This document shows, one piece after another, positions 1,441 to 33,967 of a DNA stretch of 64,000 nucleotides; position 1 is the first letter of the stretch; every line of letters starts with the position of its first letter. The stretch lies in the sequence record NC_028950.1. One strand, given 5' to 3'. The notes beneath the pieces are model-generated. The model searched no databases, was not told the DNA's origin, and was given only the letters and a program-made list of their open reading frames with translations. A program made the translations under genes and the position numbers.

Positions 1441-3591
1441 TCAATACGTGTCGTAGATCATTCGCGTGTTTTTCTTGTTACTCATGAAAATGCCCATGGT
1501 TTCCAAGATGTGGTAGTAAGCGCCACAGCAATCCCGCACAATCTTCCGTGCGTTCGAACCAATCAGGATCTCATCCGGAATGCCAGACAACTGGATGATA
1601 CTGACAGGAACGTAAATCGTCGTCATGTACTTACGACCGATGCGAGCACATTCGTCTTGAATATCCTTCACGAGATCCTTGTTCTGAATCTGATCCAGAT
1701 AGACTTGCCAGTCCGACACGTTGCCGATTTCCAGAGAAACCTTCAGCGACGTATAGGGCGGTTCATCGACCATGCCATAGATCTTGCCGAACGTACGATT
1801 CCAGAAAATGTGGTTCCAGTACGGCGTGCGATCTGCATCTTTGATTTTGTACGCATCTGCTTTCTTCAAGTGAGCAGCGCGGAAGTATTCGGTATTACCC
1901 GACTTGACGTCTTCATAAATCGACCATTCTTTCTCGGCGACCATGTCAACAATCTCGTTCAGGTTAAGACCTTTACCATCCACCACAGCTTTCATGGATT
2001 CCAGCAGGAAGTCTTTCACTTCTGTCACGATCGCACCCGGCGTTGCCGAGGAGATCATATTTGCGCCCTTCAGTTCCAGGTCAGGCTTACGGAATACGTT
2101 GCCTTCCTGTGCTGTCTTCATGGCATAGTAATGCTTAGCCATCGAAGTTGGGCAGAAGATCTTGAACTTGTACTCGTTCTTCATCTGCACGTCGAACAGA
2201 CGATCCGGATGGACGCCATAGTTCGCAGACATCATTGCATGCAGGTGAGATGATGTTTGTGCGGCCAGATACACCACGACGTCAGAGGTCGATTCCATTT
2301 CGTCCGTGAAACCGATTTCGCCGTAAACACGACCAACCCATTCCTGAACGGTAAACAGAGTCGAGTCAGTATCGCCACCGAGAACTGAGCGACGAAGACT
2401 GGTCGGGAAGTTACCTGTGGATGCAGGCATGTTACCCGTGAGCCAGAAAGCATCGATCATCGACTGCACAGAGCACAGCGTATTGTTGATGTTCTTGGCA
2501 TTGGTTGCGAGCACGCCATAGTTGTGCGGACTTTCTTTCAGGATTTCCTTCGGCTTTTTGCCAACCGAGAAAGAACGGCAAATCTGACGCGACAGGTTAA
2601 CAGTATCTTCCGAAACCGTCTTGAGAACGAACTGTGCTTCATCAACCGGCATCGTTTCATCGATGAACTTCGACAGCTGATTCAGCAACGACACCACGAA
2701 ACTGGTGTTGTGCTTATACAGATGGTAGAAGTCACCAACATACACGAATGCTGCACGCTCAAGCGGCTTCATCGTTTCGACGAAATCCCACACAGACTGC
2801 ATGTGTTGGTTCGACTGGAAGTACAGCTGACGGCTGCGCTCGATGCATTCGTTGACGTCTTGCACCGTCGGCCAATGCAACTGGAACTTCTTCATCGCTT
2901 CTTCGACCTTATCCAGATCGGTGATAGCGCAGATCGACACGAGGTTATTCAGGATCGTGTCGCGGTCCATGTAGTGGCGATTGCCTTCGATGAACTTTTC
3001 GTTGTTTGCGTTACCGTAAGCGGTCGTATTCCGGCAGTTTGTCGTGAGCGACGAATGCGAAGTCGGATTAAATAGAGCCGTAGACGGAGTGAGCGAAGCC
3101 CCGGAGAGCGAGTTATTCGTGGTCTTTGCATTGTTCTGTCCGAGATCCTTAAACACATAGAGGACCATGTCCCCAGCATTCTTGGCATCGAACATCTGAT
3201 CTTTGAGCACCGACCGTTTCACGATGTTATCCATCGTGTAAAGAGACAGGAGCGATTGCCGAACATCCGGCGAGCAATACGACGTAAACGTCGGCGACAT
3301 CGATTCGTTGTTCTCGAATACGTCTGCGAGATAACGTGACATCGTGGTTTCTTTGAGCTCACGATCTTCGAAGTTCTCACGATGGAGATAACGCACCATC
3401 GGATCCCGGAATTCGAACAGACCACCGGGCTTCATGTTTTTGATCACAAACTCACGTGCTGCTTGCATCGTGATTCCCTTTCTCTTGGAGAGAAAGAGCG
3501 ATGCCTGGTCTACATAACCGTTGAGCACTTTCGTGTCGCGGCGGTAGTCCTCTCGTTCTTTACGGAAAGTTACAGGACGCAACTGATGCAT
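1441..3591 (-). CDS. Divergent family-B DNA polymerase, catalytic subunit (phiKZ gp50-like)
   Basis: Motif C 'VLGGDTDSTLF', motif B-like 'NAKTTNNSLSGA', 'KHYYA' and 'ELKG'. Its position downstream of PhuZ fits phiKZ-like synteny (recalled). Confidence 0.85.
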   Translation of the reverse strand: MHQLRPVTFRKEREDYRRDTKVLNGYVDQASLFLSKRKGITMQAAREFVIKNMKPGGLFEFRDPMVRYLHRENFEDRELKETTMSRYLADVFENNESMSPTFTSYCSPDVRQSLLSLYTMDNIVKRSVLKDQMFDAKNAGDMVLYVFKDLGQNNAKTTNNSLSGASLTPSTALFNPTSHSSLTTNCRNTTAYGNANNEKFIEGNRHYMDRDTILNNLVSICAITDLDKVEEAMKKFQLHWPTVQDVNECIERSRQLYFQSNQHMQSVWDFVETMKPLERAAFVYVGDFYHLYKHNTSFVVSLLNQLSKFIDETMPVDEAQFVLKTVSEDTVNLSRQICRSFSVGKKPKEILKESPHNYGVLATNAKNINNTLCSVQSMIDAFWLTGNMPASTGNFPTSLRRSVLGGDTDSTLFTVQEWVGRVYGEIGFTDEMESTSDVVVYLAAQTSSHLHAMMSANYGVHPDRLFDVQMKNEYKFKIFCPTSMAKHYYAMKTAQEGNVFRKPDLELKGANMISSATPGAIVTEVKDFLLESMKAVVDGKGLNLNEIVDMVAEKEWSIYEDVKSGNTEYFRAAHLKKADAYKIKDADRTPYWNHIFWNRTFGKIYGMVDEPPYTSLKVSLEIGNVSDWQVYLDQIQNKDLVKDIQDECARIGRKYMTTIYVPVSIIQLSGIPDEILIGSNARKIVRDCCGAYYHILETMGIFMSNKKNTRMIYDTY

Positions 3592-3630
3592 TGTTTCCGT
3601 TCCTTAGGTTGACAGCAAAAAAAGATAGCA

Positions 3631-3665
3631 CCCCGTAAAGCAAATCCGAAGATCACTTTACGGGG
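3631..3665 (-). terminator. Hairpin with downstream U-run (minus strand)
   Basis: ccccgtaaag...ctttacgggg stem; A-run at about 3617-3623 reads as U-run on the minus strand. Confidence 0.6.
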
Positions 3666-3701
3666 CGGATTCAAACTAGAGGTAGACCTAACAAAAAAAT
3701 A

Positions 3702-4127
3702 TCAGGTCTTGGTCACATTACCGTTGAAGGTAATCTGGAAGTTGATGAAGCCAGCTTGCTTGAGCATCGTCGTAAGACGCGCCAGATCCGACGTCGATAC
3801 GTTCGGAATGACGATACCTGCCACGCTGACCTGAACTTCCGTGATGGAAGTCGGATCGATCCAGGGCTCACCGATGATGGTGATCGTGCCGTCGATTTTC
3901 TTGATCCGGTAGTAGTTATACTGACGCGGATCGCCGGGGAAACCCGTGGGCAGATTCCCGGACGAAACAACAGCTGCATGCACAGGCTGGATGTCGCCTT
4001 GAAGCATGACTGCGGTTTCGAACGGGAAGTAACCGAGGATTTCGACGCGTTTGAAAGAAGTACCCAGGACATTCGGAGCGTACGTCTCGAAGTCGTAGAT
4101 CTTCTTATTGTCCATCAGCTGAGACAT
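3702..4127 (-). CDS. Conserved jumbo-phage hypothetical protein upstream of the DNA polymerase
   Basis: 141-aa ORF with phage codon bias and an RBS-like AGGTGA; position recalls phiKZ-like genomes. Confidence 0.7.
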   Translation of the reverse strand: MSQLMDNKKIYDFETYAPNVLGTSFKRVEILGYFPFETAVMLQGDIQPVHAAVVSSGNLPTGFPGDPRQYNYYRIKKIDGTITIIGEPWIDPTSITEVQVSVAGIVIPNVSTSDLARLTTMLKQAGFINFQITFNGNVTKT

Positions 4128-4139
4128 GTGAGTTCACCT

Positions 4140-4520
4140 TTAATCGTCGAACGGAGTTTCGAATCTTTTCACCACAATAGAGCGGTTATTCCGATTCGAC
4201 TCGGGTGCAAACTCGAAACCATCGCCAGCATACAGACCATGCGCCCGTAATTGCGACGCGATATTTTTTACGAGAAGAAAAAAAGATTCCAGGAACCGCT
4301 GGAGGAATCTTGGATCGGGCTCCAGATGGTCACGATAGAAATTCCCCAGCTTTGAAAGCGGGGGTTCCTCGTGAACATCTTCGAGCTCGAAAATGATGAC
4401 GTCGAATACCATCAGGACGACATCACTAAGTACGTATTCAGGAAGTTTCTTCTCCGAACCCACATCGCGACAGAAGTCACGAAGCGCGTGTCGGAGGTCG
4501 ACAATTATCCGCTCAGACAT
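4140..4520 (-). CDS. Hypothetical protein, paralog-array member 1
   Basis: 126 aa. N-terminal 'RIIVDL' strand; C-terminal 'IASQLRAHGL...FEF...SIVVK'. Confidence 0.75.
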   Translation of the reverse strand: MSERIIVDLRHALRDFCRDVGSEKKLPEYVLSDVVLMVFDVIIFELEDVHEEPPLSKLGNFYRDHLEPDPRFLQRFLESFFLLVKNIASQLRAHGLYAGDGFEFAPESNRNNRSIVVKRFETPFDD

Positions 4521-4957
4521 TCCCCTTCACCATGTTGGTCGATTTCAGATTCATCGAAGATCTTGACGATGATGTTCATACCTACGAATCCTTCGAATTT
4601 CAAAACAGGATTCTTGGTACCCAAGATCCCCAATTCTTTCAAATATGCCGCGAGAGAAACAGCGAACTCGTAAGCCTGTTGGCCAACGACATCCACGTGT
4701 TCTTCATCGAGCATCCCCGTGTCGGCCAGTTCTTGAGCTTGTGCAAGGCCAAATTCCAAGAGTTCAAAGAACGGGTTAAACTGCGGTTCCCGTTTATGTT
4801 TTCTTGGATCCCAGTATTCTTCTACCGACAGCCACATGACCATAGTCAGCAGCATCTGCATCAAAGCTTTCTGGTGCTCCTCTTCGCGAAAGTGCTCCTC
4901 GAAGAAGCTCTTCCACTTCTGGATCCGATCTTTGGTCGGAACTATGAATTTTTGCAT
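4505..4957 (-). CDS. Hypothetical protein, paralog-array member 2
   Basis: 150 aa. 'KFIVPT'; C-terminal 'LAAYLKELGI...LKFEGFVGMNIIVK'. Confidence 0.75.
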   Translation of the reverse strand: MQKFIVPTKDRIQKWKSFFEEHFREEEHQKALMQMLLTMVMWLSVEEYWDPRKHKREPQFNPFFELLEFGLAQAQELADTGMLDEEHVDVVGQQAYEFAVSLAAYLKELGILGTKNPVLKFEGFVGMNIIVKIFDESEIDQHGEGECLSG

Positions 4958-5012
4958 GTTAACGATTCGCCGATAGGTGTCTCATAACCATTGCCGAACG
5001 ATCGATGTATTT

Positions 5013-5369
5013 TTATTCGATCACTTCAAACTTTAACGACATGAAACTATCGCTGGGAATGAAGCTAACGTGCTGATGAATGAAGCCAGCACGCTGCAAT
5101 TCGCGGAGAATGTGCGCACGGATCCTCATAAAGAAATCCATGATTCGCATCTGCTGCCCAACAGTAAATGGCTTGACTTCCTGATGACCCTGAAACCAGT
5201 AGTCACCATAAACCATTCTCCTGATGTACGCGCGATCTTCTTTATCTCCACGTATGCCTTCGCACAGGTTGTCTAGGGTCTCAGAAAAATCGATGAGTCC
5301 AAACTCCAGTTTGAAGAATTCCCGGAACATTTTCAGAATTTGGATCTTATCGATCAAGACCAGTTTCAT
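5013..5369 (-). CDS. Hypothetical protein, paralog-array member 3
   Basis: 118 aa. 'KLVLID'; C-terminal 'ILRELQRAGF...VSF...SLKFEV'. Confidence 0.75.
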   Translation of the reverse strand: MKLVLIDKIQILKMFREFFKLEFGLIDFSETLDNLCEGIRGDKEDRAYIRRMVYGDYWFQGHQEVKPFTVGQQMRIMDFFMRIRAHILRELQRAGFIHQHVSFIPSDSFMSLKFEVIE

Positions 5370-5794
5370 CAGAACCTCAATCGCATTTTCAAAGCGTGAG
5401 CGCTAGACCACTGAAGGCTGCGCTCATCGATGGCATAGTCGCCATGTACGTCGCGAATTAACGACATCGTGGCACGAACCATATCGTCTATGATTGCACC
5501 GATCTTCGTAGCTTCACGAATCTCGTATTCCTCAACCGAGTAATTCCGATTAAAGGTGACGCTGGAGTAGTACGACGATTCTTCTTCTTTCTTCGTCCAC
5601 TCCGCCATCGCTTCGTTCATCTCCAGAAAGATCTGAACGTCACGTGTACTTATATCTTCCACGCGCTGAGTCGCCATCACACACGACTCGATAAAGCCCT
5701 CCAGTTCATGCGGATAGAAATACAACAGATCCTCAGCAGGACCCACCTTTTCGAATACGTTTCGAAAGTCCACCAGGTAGGTTCGCTCACCCAT
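5369..5794 (-). CDS. Hypothetical protein, paralog-array member 4
   Basis: Start reassigned to MGERTYLVDF (ATG 5794) on a strong AAGGAGG RBS; 141 aa. Confidence 0.7.
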   Translation of the reverse strand: MGERTYLVDFRNVFEKVGPAEDLLYFYPHELEGFIESCVMATQRVEDISTRDVQIFLEMNEAMAEWTKKEEESSYYSSVTFNRNYSVEEYEIREATKIGAIIDDMVRATMSLIRDVHGDYAIDERSLQWSSAHALKMRLRF

Positions 5795-5912
5795 GAAACG
5801 ATCCTCCTTTAGCACTTCGATTTTCCTCGGGAACAGCGTTGTGAAAAGTTTCCGATTACGGAACGGCTCTTCAATTCTTGCTCGTCCTGGTTTTGTTTCT
5901 ACCTGGATCAGC

Positions 5913-6338
5913 CTAGAAGAAGTAGCCTCGTTGTTCTTCGTAACGTTCTGGAACATTGATAATCAGCTCCAATCTCTCGGTCAACCAGTACATGTCGTCG
6001 GGTAGTTCGGCAGCGATATTCGGAAACCACGCCAAGACTTCACCCAGTACCAAATGTTCGAGTTCTTGTTTTACAAAGTCCGCCTCACCATTGATCATGC
6101 AATCGAGGTTCAGCGCTAGATCGAGTTCTTCCTGTAATTGGCTGTGATCCGAAGTCAGATCAAAAACCTTTTCCACGATCAGGGGAAGAATCTCCTTGAT
6201 GTGGCAGGACGAATACGACTTACCTTTTTCAGTAGCCCGTCTGACGTACCAGTTAATGGGACGATGCAGATCGACTAGATATTTACCACCTTCATAAGGC
6301 GGTTTTGGGTAGACGGGATCATCGTCAAATGGTCTCAT
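5913..6338 (-). CDS. Hypothetical protein, paralog-array member 5
   Basis: Start MRPFDDD (6338) overlaps the upstream stop. 'KYLVDLH'; C-terminal 'LELIINV'. Confidence 0.65.
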   Translation of the reverse strand: MRPFDDDPVYPKPPYEGGKYLVDLHRPINWYVRRATEKGKSYSSCHIKEILPLIVEKVFDLTSDHSQLQEELDLALNLDCMINGEADFVKQELEHLVLGEVLAWFPNIAAELPDDMYWLTERLELIINVPERYEEQRGYFF

Positions 6339-6900
6339 GCCGGTTAGCGATCTTTTCTTGTTCCGCTTTCGTCCACTGGATGACTCGCCAGTCTGCATAC
6401 TCTTCGATCATCAGAGTGCGCAGATCACGACCTTGCGTGAGACGATGCAAGACGAAGCGGTTCGGATTCATATGCTCGGTCGTCAGAGTCAGCAATTGCT
6501 TGAGGACATCATCCAGCATGTCCGCAGCTTTCTTGTTTGCCGGATCATTCAGATCGTACCGCAATTCCTCACGCAGTTCTGCTTCGATGTCGAAACCGAT
6601 CAACTCACGAAGATTCATGAGGTGAATATGCCAATCGGTATCTTCGCCATAAATCCAGGCACGACGACGATTGACGATGGCTTCCATGATCGTAATGACA
6701 ACTTTACGAGTCAGATGCGTGAGTGCCGGTTTTGTAAAATCGTATTCCTGGATGCTCGGCAACATCTGGAAAATGTTCATGATAGCAGCGATGTGCTGCT
6801 GCGGATCGATAATGGTGATCTTGAGCGGACGATCGGAAATAACCGATGTGTCCATCCAGATTACGCCATCCGATGCTTTTGTGAATTCGGGCTCTCTCAC
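6325..6900 (-). CDS. Hypothetical protein, paralog-array member 6
   Basis: GTG start with GGAG RBS. 'KITIIDP'; C-terminal 'FVLHRL...RTLMIEE'. Confidence 0.7.
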   Translation of the reverse strand: MREPEFTKASDGVIWMDTSVISDRPLKITIIDPQQHIAAIMNIFQMLPSIQEYDFTKPALTHLTRKVVITIMEAIVNRRRAWIYGEDTDWHIHLMNLRELIGFDIEAELREELRYDLNDPANKKAADMLDDVLKQLLTLTTEHMNPNRFVLHRLTQGRDLRTLMIEEYADWRVIQWTKAEQEKIANRHETI

Positions 6901-7094: not shown

Positions 7095-8087
7095 TTAGAA
7101 CACCAGGCCGTTGCTGGCCTTCTTGGTGCTGCCATCCGACAGCTTGTTCTTCACGACGCGTGCGCCTTCACGCTTTTCGTAATCCGCCACCTGCTCACGC
7201 AGCTTCTTGATCACGCCGTCGAGGAAACCGTCGGCGATCGCGAAGTGCAGCGGGAACTTCAGATCGCGTTCCGTGTCCGCATTGACCGGCACGCCGACAC
7301 GTTGGAACTCGACCGGACGATCGAGCTTCGTGTTGTTCAGATCCTTGTTCAGTGTTGCCACCGAGATCAGGTTGACGTCGCCGAGCACCAGCTTTTCCTG
7401 GTGGATCGACAGCACGCCGACTTGCGGTGCGTACGTGGTGACTTCGTCGAAGTGCTGCCAGTTGTACAGGTCGCGATAGTCCAGGTTCTTGTTCTGGCCG
7501 CTGTACAGCGCGGTCAGGCAGGCGATCGCCAGATGAACCTTCGAATCGACTTCTTCGATCGTGCCGTCGACACCGTTCTGGAGGAATTGCAGGACGATCG
7601 GCTTTTCGCGGGTTTCCACGATGCCTTCGTACGATTCCAGCGTACCGATGCAGTTCTCGATGAAGTTCTTCGTATCGTCGCCGCCGATGCAGAAGACGAT
7701 GACCGACTTGCCTTGCGCCAGTGCTTCCGATGCGATCGACGGACCCATCACCGAACCCGAGCCGCCGGTAGCGGAATGGATCACGATGTTGTGTTCGGCG
7801 AGCGGGAAGCGCTGCAGCATTTCGCCCGTGTACTTGACGATTTCAGCACCGTTGTGACGACGCTTGCCGCCGGAGCCGTTGGCGTTCGGCAGTTGATAGA
7901 AGTGCTCGGCCGGCACACCGAAGGTAGATGCTGTGGAGGTGTCCATGTACACCGGATCGAGTTCTGCGTAACCGGCATTCTGCTTGCCGCGTTCGAGCTC
8001 GAAGTACTTGCCGATGCCGATGCCTGCGCCGCCGCAAGCGTAAATACGGAGTTTGCCCAGCGTGTTGGTATTGTTCAGTTCCGACAT
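7095..8087 (-). CDS. phuZ: PhuZ phage tubulin (tubulin/FtsZ-family GTPase)
   Basis: N-terminal 'RIYACGGAGIGIG', tubulin signature 'SATGGSGSVMG', 'NCIGTLESY', PhuZ-type C-terminal tail 'KKASNGLVF'; 330 aa. Confidence 0.95.
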   Translation of the reverse strand: MSELNNTNTLGKLRIYACGGAGIGIGKYFELERGKQNAGYAELDPVYMDTSTASTFGVPAEHFYQLPNANGSGGKRRHNGAEIVKYTGEMLQRFPLAEHNIVIHSATGGSGSVMGPSIASEALAQGKSVIVFCIGGDDTKNFIENCIGTLESYEGIVETREKPIVLQFLQNGVDGTIEEVDSKVHLAIACLTALYSGQNKNLDYRDLYNWQHFDEVTTYAPQVGVLSIHQEKLVLGDVNLISVATLNKDLNNTKLDRPVEFQRVGVPVNADTERDLKFPLHFAIADGFLDGVIKKLREQVADYEKREGARVVKNKLSDGSTKKASNGLVF

Positions 8088-8196: not shown

Positions 8197-9009
8197 ATGC
8201 ATTCAGGATCGGCCGTTGAGAAGGCCATCACGGAGATCAAGTACATCATCCCTGAGGAAATTCTTGATCTCGTCTTTCTCAAGAAAGCTTACTTCTTTCG
8301 TGACAGGCCGACCAACCTGGATCGAGAAATCATCAAGAAGGTCATCGCACCACGCGTGATGGTCGACTGCAGTCTCATCGGAGGTACAGACTATATCGTA
8401 CCCCTGATGGATATTTATCGTGAGCTCACCGAGGAGTGGATGGCTGTTTACCGCATCCCGAAAGAGTTCACCGATAACCGCAGCGTCATGTCGATTCTCG
8501 GCGTGATGTATATCAACCCGTACATGGTCTCGGCTCCTGCAGGTAACAACATCACCGGCTGGTCGCACATCATGGCGACTACCCAAGCTGTGTTGGAAGC
8601 GATGTCTCCGATCCCGAACTTCAGTTCGTCGGACGTATCGCTCGAAGGTGAGAACGTGATCGTCATTCGCGACGCTCGTGTTCTTCCGACATACAGCTAT
8701 GCTCGTGTCATTCTGTCTTACGACGAGTACATGAGCAACATCAATCCGCGTTCGTATCTCGCGTTTGCCAAGATGTGTGAACTGGCTGTCAAGTCATACA
8801 TCTGGAAGAACCGCGTGATTCCTCTGGATCGTGGTGAATTGACGGCTGGCGTGACGCTTGGCGCCATCAAGGAAGTCATCGACGAATACAAGGACGCAGA
8901 ACAGATGTATCAGGATTATCGCAAAGACACCATGCGAAAAGTCCTGATGATGAATGACGAAGGTCGTAAGCGTCGTCACATCACGCGCATTATTGGCGGC
9001 TATAAATAA
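8197..9009 (+). CDS. Conserved phiKZ-like core hypothetical protein divergent from phuZ
   Basis: 270 aa. 'AVEKAITEIKYIIPEEILDLVF' N-terminus recalls a Chimalliviridae family; AAGGA RBS. Confidence 0.75.
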   Translation: MHSGSAVEKAITEIKYIIPEEILDLVFLKKAYFFRDRPTNLDREIIKKVIAPRVMVDCSLIGGTDYIVPLMDIYRELTEEWMAVYRIPKEFTDNRSVMSILGVMYINPYMVSAPAGNNITGWSHIMATTQAVLEAMSPIPNFSSSDVSLEGENVIVIRDARVLPTYSYARVILSYDEYMSNINPRSYLAFAKMCELAVKSYIWKNRVIPLDRGELTAGVTLGAIKEVIDEYKDAEQMYQDYRKDTMRKVLMMNDEGRKRRHITRIIGGYK

Positions 9010-10971: not shown

Positions 10972-12282
10972 TTACGCAGCCAACTTAAGACGCGACGAAG
11001 CACGTTTGGCGATCTCGTCCATGAAGGCACGGGGATCGTCCGGATGTTCCTTGAATGCATTCTCGACCTGACATCCAGGCAACTGGATATCGTAAGCCAT
11101 GAAAGGCACACACCAGATTCCCTGCATCTCGCGATCGAGTTCGTACATGTGTACCATGTACGCCCAGATCTCTTTCGAAGTCAGTTCGCCGATCGTGAAC
11201 TCATGATCGATACGACCATCGCGCTTAACCGCCTCGTCGAGATCTTCGGGATGATTCGTGGTCTTGAAGATGATGAGATTATCCAGACTCACCACCCCAT
11301 CGAATGCGTTCAGATAACCCGACATGGTGAGCATGTTCAGGTTCATGTCTGCCACGACATCGACCAGTTCTTTTTTCTTTTTGCGATCTTTGACAGCATT
11401 ACCTGCCTGATCGATATCTTCCAGCAGCAAGAACGAACCAGGCTTGATCTTTGACAATGCGTCGACCAATGATGCGTTCGTTTGATCCGACAGATCGAGT
11501 ACGTACAGATCCTTCTTGAAATGACCAGCCAGGAGTTTCACCAGCGTGGTCTTACCCGTTCCAGGAGGGCCTTGGAAGAGCGAAGAGATTTTGTACGTGA
11601 GGCCCTTCTTGCGATACCATTCGCGGCGGCCGAGGAAGTCGGAAATCTTTTCGATAATCTCAGCTTTCAACGCGGCATTCATGCAGAAAGTGTCGATGCT
11701 GCGGTGTGGCAATTTGCCGACTTCTTCCCAACTCCGTGCTTCGCGATTGAAGTTGTGAATCATCACGTCGCCAACTGCGCCGCGCTTTTCGTTAAAGAGA
11801 TCCACGAGATCTTCAAAGACCTTGTGACTCCAACCGAAAGTGTAGATATCGATTTCTTCTTTCTGTTTCTCGGAACCGGACGAATCCATCCGACCCTTTC
11901 TGAACCAGAAGAATTTTCCCTTGTAGAAAAACAGATGCAAACCGTTTCCGATCCCCATGCGGTACGGTTTGTATGTTTCATCGACGAAGAGGTCATCTTT
12001 GTACTGACGGAACATAAAGAAGTTCTTGCTGAATCGGCGATAACCCGATTGCATGAACCACTTGTCAAATGCGTTGTACGCGTCCAGGTTTCCGTCGTAT
12101 CCCGCATTGTTCAACGACATGTTCACCGTCGTGTAGGCGACCAGGAAATCCCAGAGCTTCTTGGGAACATCCTTCAGATAAAACATCAGTCCGCCAACAA
12201 TCGGCAAAGCCAATGTAGCCACCAGCGGGTTAGTCCTCGTGAGGTCGTTGTACTGCTGAAGCAGTTGGTTGAACCAGTCCAT
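10972..12282 (-). CDS. BCS1-like membrane-anchored AAA+ ATPase
   Basis: N-terminal TM 'PLVATLALPIVGGLMFYL'; 'REWYRKKG' pre-Walker motif; Walker A GPPGTGKT; Walker B LLLEDID; 'SGYLNAFDGV'; 'KTTNHPEDLDEAVKRDGRID'. Start at MDWFNQ with a GGGGA RBS. Confidence 0.85.
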   Translation of the reverse strand: MDWFNQLLQQYNDLTRTNPLVATLALPIVGGLMFYLKDVPKKLWDFLVAYTTVNMSLNNAGYDGNLDAYNAFDKWFMQSGYRRFSKNFFMFRQYKDDLFVDETYKPYRMGIGNGLHLFFYKGKFFWFRKGRMDSSGSEKQKEEIDIYTFGWSHKVFEDLVDLFNEKRGAVGDVMIHNFNREARSWEEVGKLPHRSIDTFCMNAALKAEIIEKISDFLGRREWYRKKGLTYKISSLFQGPPGTGKTTLVKLLAGHFKKDLYVLDLSDQTNASLVDALSKIKPGSFLLLEDIDQAGNAVKDRKKKKELVDVVADMNLNMLTMSGYLNAFDGVVSLDNLIIFKTTNHPEDLDEAVKRDGRIDHEFTIGELTSKEIWAYMVHMYELDREMQGIWCVPFMAYDIQLPGCQVENAFKEHPDDPRAFMDEIAKRASSRLKLAA

Positions 12283-12360
12283 GTTCTTATTCCCCGAAAA
12301 AGGTCTTGTCAAAGTAAAGGTCGACCAAATAAAAAAAGACCCAAACCTATGCAGAGCATA

Positions 12361-32534: not shown

Positions 32535-33967
32535 TAGCCGATTTCGATCTGGTCAGCGAACCAGTCCGCGACGTAGTCGACCACCGCCAGGTTCAGCGCG
32601 TCTTCCGTGCTGATCTGTTCGTTGGCTGCCATCGCTTCGTTCACGCCACGCAGGATGCTGATTGCGTCGGTGTGATTGAACATCGTCAGGCAGACCGCCT
32701 TCATCGCGAGGATATCGATGTCCTTCAGTTCCGGATTGTAGACGCGGGAGATGAACTCTTCTGCGTTGTCCAGAATGCGATTGACGTTGGCGCGGATGAC
32801 TTCGTCGTCCGTGGTACGAACGTAATGGCGGATGAATTCGCCGATGGCGCGACGCACGGAGATCAGCATGCCGCTTTCCGCGTTCTGCTTGGCGAGCGTG
32901 ACTTGATAAGCCCACGCCTGCTTGTACTTCTCCGTACCAGCGACGATGTCTTCGAGGTAGGTCTTGCGATCGCCCGAGATTGCAGCGCCCAGAACCGTCT
33001 CGACGTCACCGCCTTCTTCCATGTAGCGGTCGTACACCGACTTGTTGACGAACACGGTCTTGTTGTCGATCTTCTCGATCAGCTTACCGTGCTTCATCTG
33101 CTGGTTGTTGTACTCCATCGCGATGTAGAGCGCCGCACCCGTGACTTCTTGCAGGTTCTTCAGTGCGAAGGTGTACTTCGAGCTCGACAGGCCGTTCACG
33201 CCCGTGCCTGTCGGAACGCCTTCACCGCCGATCAGCAGGCGGTCTGCGAACAGGTAGGTCGCGAAGTTGCGAGCCGTACCCTTGACGCGATCTGCGCGGA
33301 AATCGTCGTACGTCTTGAACGAAGTCGACTGATGCGCGAACACCGTGTTCCAGACTTCACGGATCAGTTCGATGCCTTCGTTGGCCACGAACTGGTCGAT
33401 AGCCGTATCGTAGGCTTCGGCACCGATCTTCAGCAGACCGAGCATCTGCTCGTCGGTCAGTTCCGGATAGTCCAGCACCAGAGCCTGGTTTTCCTGCGGC
33501 TTGATCGAGGCAAAGCCTTCGAGCTTGTTCACGATGGCCGGAACGTCGAACAGGGGCGAACCCGTGACCATTTCGACCGTGTAGCTGCGAACGCCCGTAC
33601 GCTCGTCGATGTCCAGGACTTCCTTGAGCTTGTTGTGCAGTTCATGCACTGCCGGAATCACGACGGTGGTCGCGAATGCCACGTGGCCAGCCAGAGCCGT
33701 GCCGAGAGCCGATGACGCCGATTCCATGTAGACGTCATGCATGTGTTCTTGCACTTCGCCATCGACAATCTGCGTTTCGTTGCCCTGGTAGATCTGGGCC
33801 GGCAGCTTGTCGATTTCGCTCAGGCAGTCGATTGCGCTGCCCCAGACATGGGTAGCAGCCAGTGCTTCTGCGATCGGCGAACCAGCCTTCGGACGCAGCG
33901 ACACGCCCTTGTCGGCGAGCACGGCCACGAGATCTTTCGAGGAGTTCAGTGCTTCGAGAGTCAGCAT
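32534..33967 (-). CDS. Virion (head) protein, phiKZ gp177-like
   Basis: 477-aa helical protein between the vRNAP subunit genes; synteny. Confidence 0.7.
   Translation of the reverse strand: MLTLEALNSSKDLVAVLADKGVSLRPKAGSPIAEALAATHVWGSAIDCLSEIDKLPAQIYQGNETQIVDGEVQEHMHDVYMESASSALGTALAGHVAFATTVVIPAVHELHNKLKEVLDIDERTGVRSYTVEMVTGSPLFDVPAIVNKLEGFASIKPQENQALVLDYPELTDEQMLGLLKIGAEAYDTAIDQFVANEGIELIREVWNTVFAHQSTSFKTYDDFRADRVKGTARNFATYLFADRLLIGGEGVPTGTGVNGLSSSKYTFALKNLQEVTGAALYIAMEYNNQQMKHGKLIEKIDNKTVFVNKSVYDRYMEEGGDVETVLGAAISGDRKTYLEDIVAGTEKYKQAWAYQVTLAKQNAESGMLISVRRAIGEFIRHYVRTTDDEVIRANVNRILDNAEEFISRVYNPELKDIDILAMKAVCLTMFNHTDAISILRGVNEAMAANEQISTEDALNLAVVDYVADWFADQIEIG

Follow-up and report, generated by a model that had tools for sequence, protein, structure and literature searches.

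The protein shell of the phage nucleus is selective in its cargo, and the only cargo-specific factors known, Imp2 and Imp4, lie outside the 68-gene core genome. A gene array that may bear on this choice lies in Ralstonia phage RSL2 (NC_028950.1), a Chiangmaivirus and chimallivirus (nucleus-forming jumbo phage), of which bases 1-64000 (64,000 nucleotides, the window) were analyzed. The window matches RSL2 at 100% by megablast. The array is composed of six minus-strand genes (4140-6900) located between the gene encoding the tubulin PhuZ and the gene pair encoding an SH3DP domain protein and DNA polymerase. The order of transcription on the minus strand is PhuZ, ORF010, ORF009, ORF008, ORF007, ORF006, ORF005, ORF004 and DNA polymerase (ORF, open reading frame). 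The six genes form an ordered set of paralogs that share one small alpha/beta fold and diverged long ago, and the fold predicted for them is that of Imp2 (gp47) of phage phiKZ. An earlier note made from the sequence alone had described six open reading frames here as diverged paralogs, an expanded family of possible import adaptors; all six are present on the minus strand at the coordinates it gave, and every motif it quoted was found in the translations.

The phiKZ gene orf47 encodes Imp2, which is needed to import the RecA-like protein gp152 and is itself imported through Imp1. The gene orf48 encodes Imp4, which together with Imp5 is needed to import the host protein TopA. The earlier note had named both correctly as import factors encoded just upstream of the DNA polymerase gene, and later papers term them cargo-specific adaptors. 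Both have been reported to be conserved in Pseudomonas phages only, and the genetic evidence for the cargo role of Imp2 and its Imp1-dependent entry comes from phiKZ and PhiPA3 only. No linear import signal is known for phage-nucleus import.

Identity among the six proteins had been judged too low for simple BLAST, and BLASTP among them gives nothing significant. In the all-vs-all comparison of the RSL2 and phiKZ block proteins, the only match was between gp49 and ORF004. Comparison by hhalign of profiles built from six sequences also gave no links among array proteins (best E 0.03), and deeper orthogroups were therefore needed. The blocks upstream of the SH3DP gene were gathered from about 30 chimalliviruses and metagenomic relatives (a metagenome scan for the block gave 3 loci), and 287 proteins were clustered. 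The orthogroups were compared by hhalign, with reversed-alignment decoys giving a top decoy score of 22.6. Each RSL2 array gene has a one-to-one ortholog within the RSL2 clade. ORF010 and ORF005 fall into the same phmmer clusters as their counterparts in the FLC9-like clade (ORF010 with FLC9 gp9), and the other four are linked by hhalign to the FLC9-like families at the same positions (ORF009/c8, 37.0; ORF007/c15, 29.1; ORF006/c6, 28.1; ORF008/c5, 27.8).

Several of these families are related to one another across positions. The ORF005-type family matches c6 with a score of 72.2 (E 8e-11) and c15 with a score of 39.9, c6 matches c15 with a score of 57.6, and the ORF005 and ORF006 families are both related to c15 (E 1e-5 to 1e-7). 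A hidden Markov model (HMM) seeded on the ORF005 family and iterated against the protein pool and decoys takes in c6 at E 2e-6, c15 at E 3e-5 and the ORF006 family at E 8.9e-5 (the RSF1 ortholog), with RSL2 ORF006 at 7.5e-4. No decoy was recruited, the best decoy standing at E 0.087 or worse. With merged families, the hhalign scores are 75.6 for ORF005/ORF006 (E 3.4e-11), 43.4 for ORF006/ORF007 (E 1.1e-5) and 36.4 for ORF005/ORF007 (E 2.1e-5). The ORF008 family scores 28.1 with ORF006 (110 columns) and 27.1 with ORF005 (105 columns), both above the decoy maximum, whereas ORF005/ORF009 scores 22.2, which is the noise level. Neither the ORF009 nor the ORF010 family gives a profile score above decoys to the ORF005/ORF006/c15 core.

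The ORF005 alignment (A2) matches the ORF006 alignment (A8) by hhalign at E 6.4e-4, and the aligned part is exactly the terminal helix and the hairpin. Searched with the core profile (alignment A9) at a cut-off of E 1e-3, 1.84 billion metagenome proteins yielded 616 cluster representatives, all of them full-length matches in proteins of about 120-180 amino acids (aa). An HMM enlarged with the metagenome matches (193 sequences) places four ORF007-family proteins above every decoy (E 0.012-0.07 vs 0.1). Membership of the core above decoys is clear for ORF005 and ORF006 and narrow for ORF007 and ORF008, the latter via merged families. On these profile comparisons, ORF005, ORF006 and ORF007 are homologous (E 3e-11 to 2e-5) and ORF008 is probably related to them. 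The six had been proposed to be paralogs throughout; profiles uphold this for the first three and probably ORF008, and ORF009 and ORF010 join the family by predicted structure only.

AlphaFold2 models were made for two of the six proteins, ORF005 (22-sequence alignment) and ORF009 (15-sequence alignment including distant orthologs). The ORF005 model (predicted local distance difference test score, pLDDT, 82.5; predicted template modelling score, pTM, 0.77) contains a strand at residues 4-8, helices at 10-20, 28-46, 55-66 and 70-93, and strands at 102-106 and 114-119 (beta-alpha4-beta-beta). The ORF009 model (pLDDT 79.1, pTM 0.73) is disordered at residues 1-17 and contains a strand at 18-23, helices at 25-37, 47-59, 66-78 and 83-104, and strands at 117-119 and 124-129. 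The shared order of strand, helices, long terminal helix and hairpin that had been read from the sequences is seen in both models, and this predicted common order is not due to chance. In the predicted array fold, a strand at the N-terminus is followed by a core of four helices, the last of them long, and a hairpin at the C-terminus completes a sheet of three strands.

Both models were searched with Foldseek against the viral models of BFVD, and the best 50 of about 250 matches were considered in each list. After its own family, the matches of the ORF005 model are nearly all chimallivirus orphan proteins, and many of the BFVD matches were verified as array genes by exact accession look-up. The ORF005 model matches RP12 ORF008 and five of the 11 genes of the Eowyn block (gp075, gp076, gp081, gp083 and gp084). 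It also matches PhiPA3 gp044, 201phi2-1 gp079, Noxifer gp041 and an SL2 protein of the same 90% cluster as phiKZ gp47 (probability 0.95-0.97; template modelling score, TM, by query 0.52-0.58). All four are Imp2-family proteins with verified accessions, and both sides of this match are predicted models. The ORF009 model matches Eowyn gp076 with probability 1.00 and the ORF005 homolog A0A7R7IB64 with probability 0.82 (TM 0.47/0.51). Library models of the FLC6 series were assigned to array homologs by length and accession series only; among them, a 191-aa model of ORF010-homolog length is matched by the ORF005 model with probability 0.99 (TM 0.51), and the 141-aa and 142-aa models (ORF008 and ORF006 homologs by length) are weak matches (probability 0.25-0.33). 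The fold order and the array-protein neighbourhood are thereby covered for ORF005 and ORF009 through their own models and for ORF010 through a homolog library model and Eowyn gp075. The structural case is built on the enrichment and reciprocity of the Foldseek matches, not on single E-values.

These data bear on the possibility that the six are not one family and that several, above all ORF008, ORF009 and ORF010, are unrelated orphans with a convergent, common small-protein layout. Such a reading would account for the lack of pairwise BLAST or shallow-profile signal among the six and for the ORF009 and ORF010 profile scores, and TM-scores near 0.5 lie at the border of fold identity. It is nevertheless very improbable, given that ORF005, ORF006 and ORF007 are homologous with no decoy recruited, and that array proteins make up the overwhelming majority of the structural neighbours of ORF005 and ORF009, 19 of the top 50 in BFVD being common to both models. 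Outside the viral models the fold yields essentially nothing. No convincing counterpart was found in the PDB by Foldseek (best E 0.59), the search of AFDB clusters gave one 131-aa orphan only, and PDB sequence searches with Imp2, Imp4 and ORF005 found nothing. A look-up of ORF007 in the ESM Atlas yielded neither features nor a model.

The array occupies the same place in phiKZ, where the order is gp42, gp43, 44, 44.1, 45, 46, 47, 48, gp49 and gp50 (DNA polymerase). The phiKZ genes gp42, gp49 and gp50 correspond to ORF012 (BLASTP 1e-37), ORF004 and the DNA polymerase gene of RSL2, respectively, and the RSL2 array is syntenic with gp43-48, at the equivalent position just upstream of the polymerase gene, as the earlier note had placed it. 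The phiKZ gp43 family matches the ORF010 family by hhalign (38.2, E 1.6e-4) and recruits Eowyn gp075, itself a structural match of the ORF005 model. A block between a gp42-like gene or PhuZ and the SH3DP and DNA polymerase genes was found in every chimallivirus examined, and an opposite-strand ORF012-like gene stands upstream of it in Goslar, Ea35-70, Eowyn, RP12, FLC9, Noxifer and PhiPA3. Across phages, the gp43-type gene (ORF010, Eowyn gp075) comes first, followed by the ORF009-type gene (c8, Eowyn gp076), and the ORF005-type gene comes last. The number of genes per block is 6 in RSL2, 6-7 in the FLC9-like clade, 7 in RP12 and phiKZ, 8 in Goslar, Ea35-70, Noxifer and PhiPA3, and 11 in Eowyn. 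The earlier note had spoken of an expanded family; the array is no expansion peculiar to RSL2, and the ordered block predates the chimallivirus radiation.

The block also changes quickly. Identity between RSL2 and L007 is 28-40% for the array, whereas it is 54-60% for PhuZ, SH3DP and the polymerase; the array diverges faster than its flanks, which explains why gp49 is the first gene of the published core genome and the array genes are missing from it. Recent tandem duplicates are present in Noxifer (gp037/gp038, L035 5289-6085), where they are still detectable by phmmer, and at 7091-7952 of L012, where two copies of the Imp4 family are adjacent. Arms-race gene arrays typically show rapid divergence, tandem duplication and changes in copy number, and none of the six proteins contains a recognizable domain. 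Most members could accordingly share the fold and be fast-evolving host-takeover or counter-defence proteins, with Imp2 and Imp4 recruited to import. This is an improbable account of an array that sits inside a conserved replication gene block and keeps its gene order and positional orthologs across very distant chimalliviruses of different hosts; in addition, phiKZ imp2 and imp4 tolerate no transposon insertions. The paralog array is real, family-wide and apparently new to description, and no paper describing this family or its array structure was found in the searchable literature.

The comparison with phiKZ proteins differs from family to family. The Imp2 family (gp47, PhiPA3 gp044, 201phi2-1 gp079 and Noxifer gp041) has the same predicted fold as ORF005 and a similar size, and the Imp2 gene lies in the syntenic block too, as the second gene upstream of the SH3DP gene, but its sequence homology to the RSL2 array is undetectable (hhalign 18.4 or less). 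Imp4 (gp48) resembles ORF005 in standing immediately upstream of the SH3DP gene, in length (127 vs 126 aa) and, in its sequence, in a hydrophobic stretch at the N-terminus and an end resembling a hairpin at the C-terminus. It differs in that it has no sequence link to ORF005, and no Imp4 accession is among the structural matches listed. The gp43 family is orthologous to ORF010, as its profile and its place at the upstream end of the block both show; its uncharacterized members in Pseudomonas phages, however, are about 340-365 aa, about twice the length of ORF010. A similarity to phiKZ gp47 and gp48 had been anticipated; it holds for the ORF005 and Imp2-family models and not for the sequences, and in the profile comparison with phiKZ genes the gp43 family was matched, whereas the Imp2 and Imp4 families stayed at noise.

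The best explanation as a whole, which is held tentatively and at slightly less than an even chance, is that the six are Imp2-fold paralogs acting as cargo-specific import helpers. For the six themselves we infer an import-adaptor role by analogy with two phiKZ relatives, one structural (Imp2) and one a neighbour in the block (Imp4). Several points weigh against this explanation. The phiKZ selections pointed to gp47 and gp48 alone within the block, though few cargos were tried. No array group has a sequence link to the Imp2 or Imp4 families by phmmer, iterated HMM or hhalign, the best score against the Imp2 family being that of the ORF005 family (18.4, below the decoy maximum). The Imp4-family accessions Q8SDB4, F8SJS7, B3FK55 and I7CDT4 are absent from the best 50 of about 250 Foldseek matches of both models. 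The links of ORF008, ORF009 and ORF010 to the core by sequence are weak or absent, and the merged families are built on orthology calls with scores of 28-37, the decoy maximum being 22.6. Two of six proteins were modelled, from shallow alignments, and single Foldseek matches have E-values of 0.01-0.2 and TM-scores of about 0.5-0.6.

In the main rival reading, the members are subunits that reside in the nucleus as partners of replication or recombination enzymes and have a mediator or accessory role like that of T4 UvsY for UvsX; the import phenotypes in phiKZ would then arise from piggy-back entry as a complex. The location of the block, always directly upstream of SH3DP and DNA polymerase, fits such partners, as does the fact that Imp2 is itself imported and has a RecA/UvsX-like client and that the client of Imp4 is a topoisomerase; ordered one-to-one orthologs across clades likewise suggest fixed partners over a shifting repertoire. 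Fast divergence and a copy number that changes from 6 to 11 with recent duplications would, however, be unusual for core replisome subunits, the client of Imp4 is a host protein, and none of the known replication accessory folds resembles the array proteins. Stable nuclear partners are judged unlikely on balance, and the present data do not separate them from adaptors.

If the array proteins are import helpers, each member would bind a single client or a small number of them, probably proteins of DNA replication or recombination, for which the phiKZ precedents are gp152 (Imp2) and host TopA (Imp4). The member would present its client to the conserved importer Imp1/PicA and enter the nucleus together with it. 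The scaffold would be made up of the conserved strand, long helix and hairpin, and the client surface of the length-variable middle helices (alignment A9). The proposed logic, in which soluble adaptors give a shared gate its cargo specificity, resembles that of eukaryotic importin-type cargo adaptors by analogy only; the phage proteins are alpha/beta domains of about 15 kDa with no structural or sequence relation to these. An Imp1/PicA homolog of 485 aa is encoded in RSL2 (E 5e-27 to phiKZ gp69). Co-folding of this protein with ORF006 gave 0.07, 0.52 and 0.21 over three runs, and the median of 0.21 is below the mark, a value that speaks neither for nor against a contact. Two Imp1/PicA paralogs each are present in two metagenomic chimallivirus genomes, L009 (G005; E 4e-54 and 4e-19 to RSL2 Imp1) and L045 (G006; E 3e-45 and 2e-23), and the importer itself can therefore be duplicated.

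The coordinates of the array and its neighbours are listed in the table.

Table. Genes of the RSL2 array and of its flanks in the window
Gene	Coordinates	Strand	Description
ORF005	4140..4520	-	126 aa; array member 6/6, last before SH3DP; position of phiKZ gp48 (Imp4)
ORF006	4505..4957	-	150 aa; array member 5/6; ORF005 paralog (by profiles); position of phiKZ gp47 (Imp2)
ORF007	5013..5369	-	118 aa; array member 4/6
ORF008	5369..5794	-	141 aa; array member 3/6
ORF009	5913..6338	-	141 aa; array member 2/6
ORF010	6325..6900	-	191 aa from GTG 6900; array member 1/6; phiKZ gp43-family ortholog
ORF004	3702..4127	-	SH3DP domain protein (Pfam PF20287); downstream anchor, outside the array
DNA polymerase (ORF003)	1441..3591	-	RefSeq annotation and synteny with phiKZ gp50; downstream anchor
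Tubulin PhuZ (ORF011)	7095..8087	-	RefSeq annotation; upstream neighbour of the array
ORF012	8197..9009	+	phiKZ gp42 homolog; divergent gene upstream of PhuZ; upstream anchor

Some of these starts differ from those in RefSeq. The start of ORF008 had been moved to 5794 in the earlier note; the ATG there is preceded by the ribosome-binding site AAGGAGG, and the RefSeq start is identical. The RefSeq starts of ORF005 (4412), ORF007 (5216) and probably ORF010 (ATG 6855, 176 aa) are too far downstream. The longer forms are backed by full-length orthologs (126, 118 and 191 aa, respectively) that are conserved from the upstream starts; in ORF005, conservation begins at M1 in 20 full-length homologs. 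Truncated RefSeq records of the mis-started genes are also present in BFVD, as 90-aa and 118-aa models. ORF009 has an in-frame alternative ATG at 6398 with a GAAGAG-like ribosome-binding site, from which it would overlap ORF010 by 74 nucleotides. This upstream extension is kept in some orthologs, and in the model the shorter form is itself disordered over residues 1-17.

ORF004 was considered as a seventh array member and ruled out. It belongs to a different family, SH3DP (PF20287; E 6.6e-35, 119.8 bits vs a Pfam gathering score of 25), and matches phiKZ gp49 by BLASTP (1.4e-11); among the core genes of Chimalliviridae, SH3DP is cg1. The six array proteins all lack a Pfam family, and PHROGs has clade-private families only. 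A search of the whole RSL2 genome with the family HMMs gave no further array member, and a borderline match at 32672-33712 (+) was rejected as an antisense open reading frame inside ORF035. ORF017 (10972-12312, -), annotated as hypothetical, contains the Walker A motif GPPGTGKT and is AAA+ ATPase-like.

Two observations concern other genomes. The BFVD entry A0A1Y0SV41 (Noxifer, 136 aa), matched by both models, differs from the 136-aa gene of the Noxifer block, gp038 (A0A1Y0T091), and the Noxifer genome may therefore also encode the fold outside its block. In the GC-rich metagenomic phage L009, the open reading frame translations at about 2000-3800, upstream of the block, resemble tRNA-gene read-through, which suggests a tRNA cluster at this site.

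The analysis indicates that Imp2 stands within a structurally conserved, sequence-divergent family encoded by an ordered tandem block in all chimalliviruses examined. It may be, though this wider proposal is rather doubtful, that in every nucleus-forming phage an ordered set of 6 to 11 Imp2-fold proteins, inherited vertically, makes up the cargo-recognition repertoire of the nucleus. One conserved client class would then be served by each positional ortholog (gp43/ORF010 type through ORF005 type), and new clients, such as host proteins, would come with lineage-specific duplicates. For the question of how the shell chooses its cargo, the result is a defined list of candidate adaptors, comprising the six proteins in RSL2 and gp43-46 in phiKZ.

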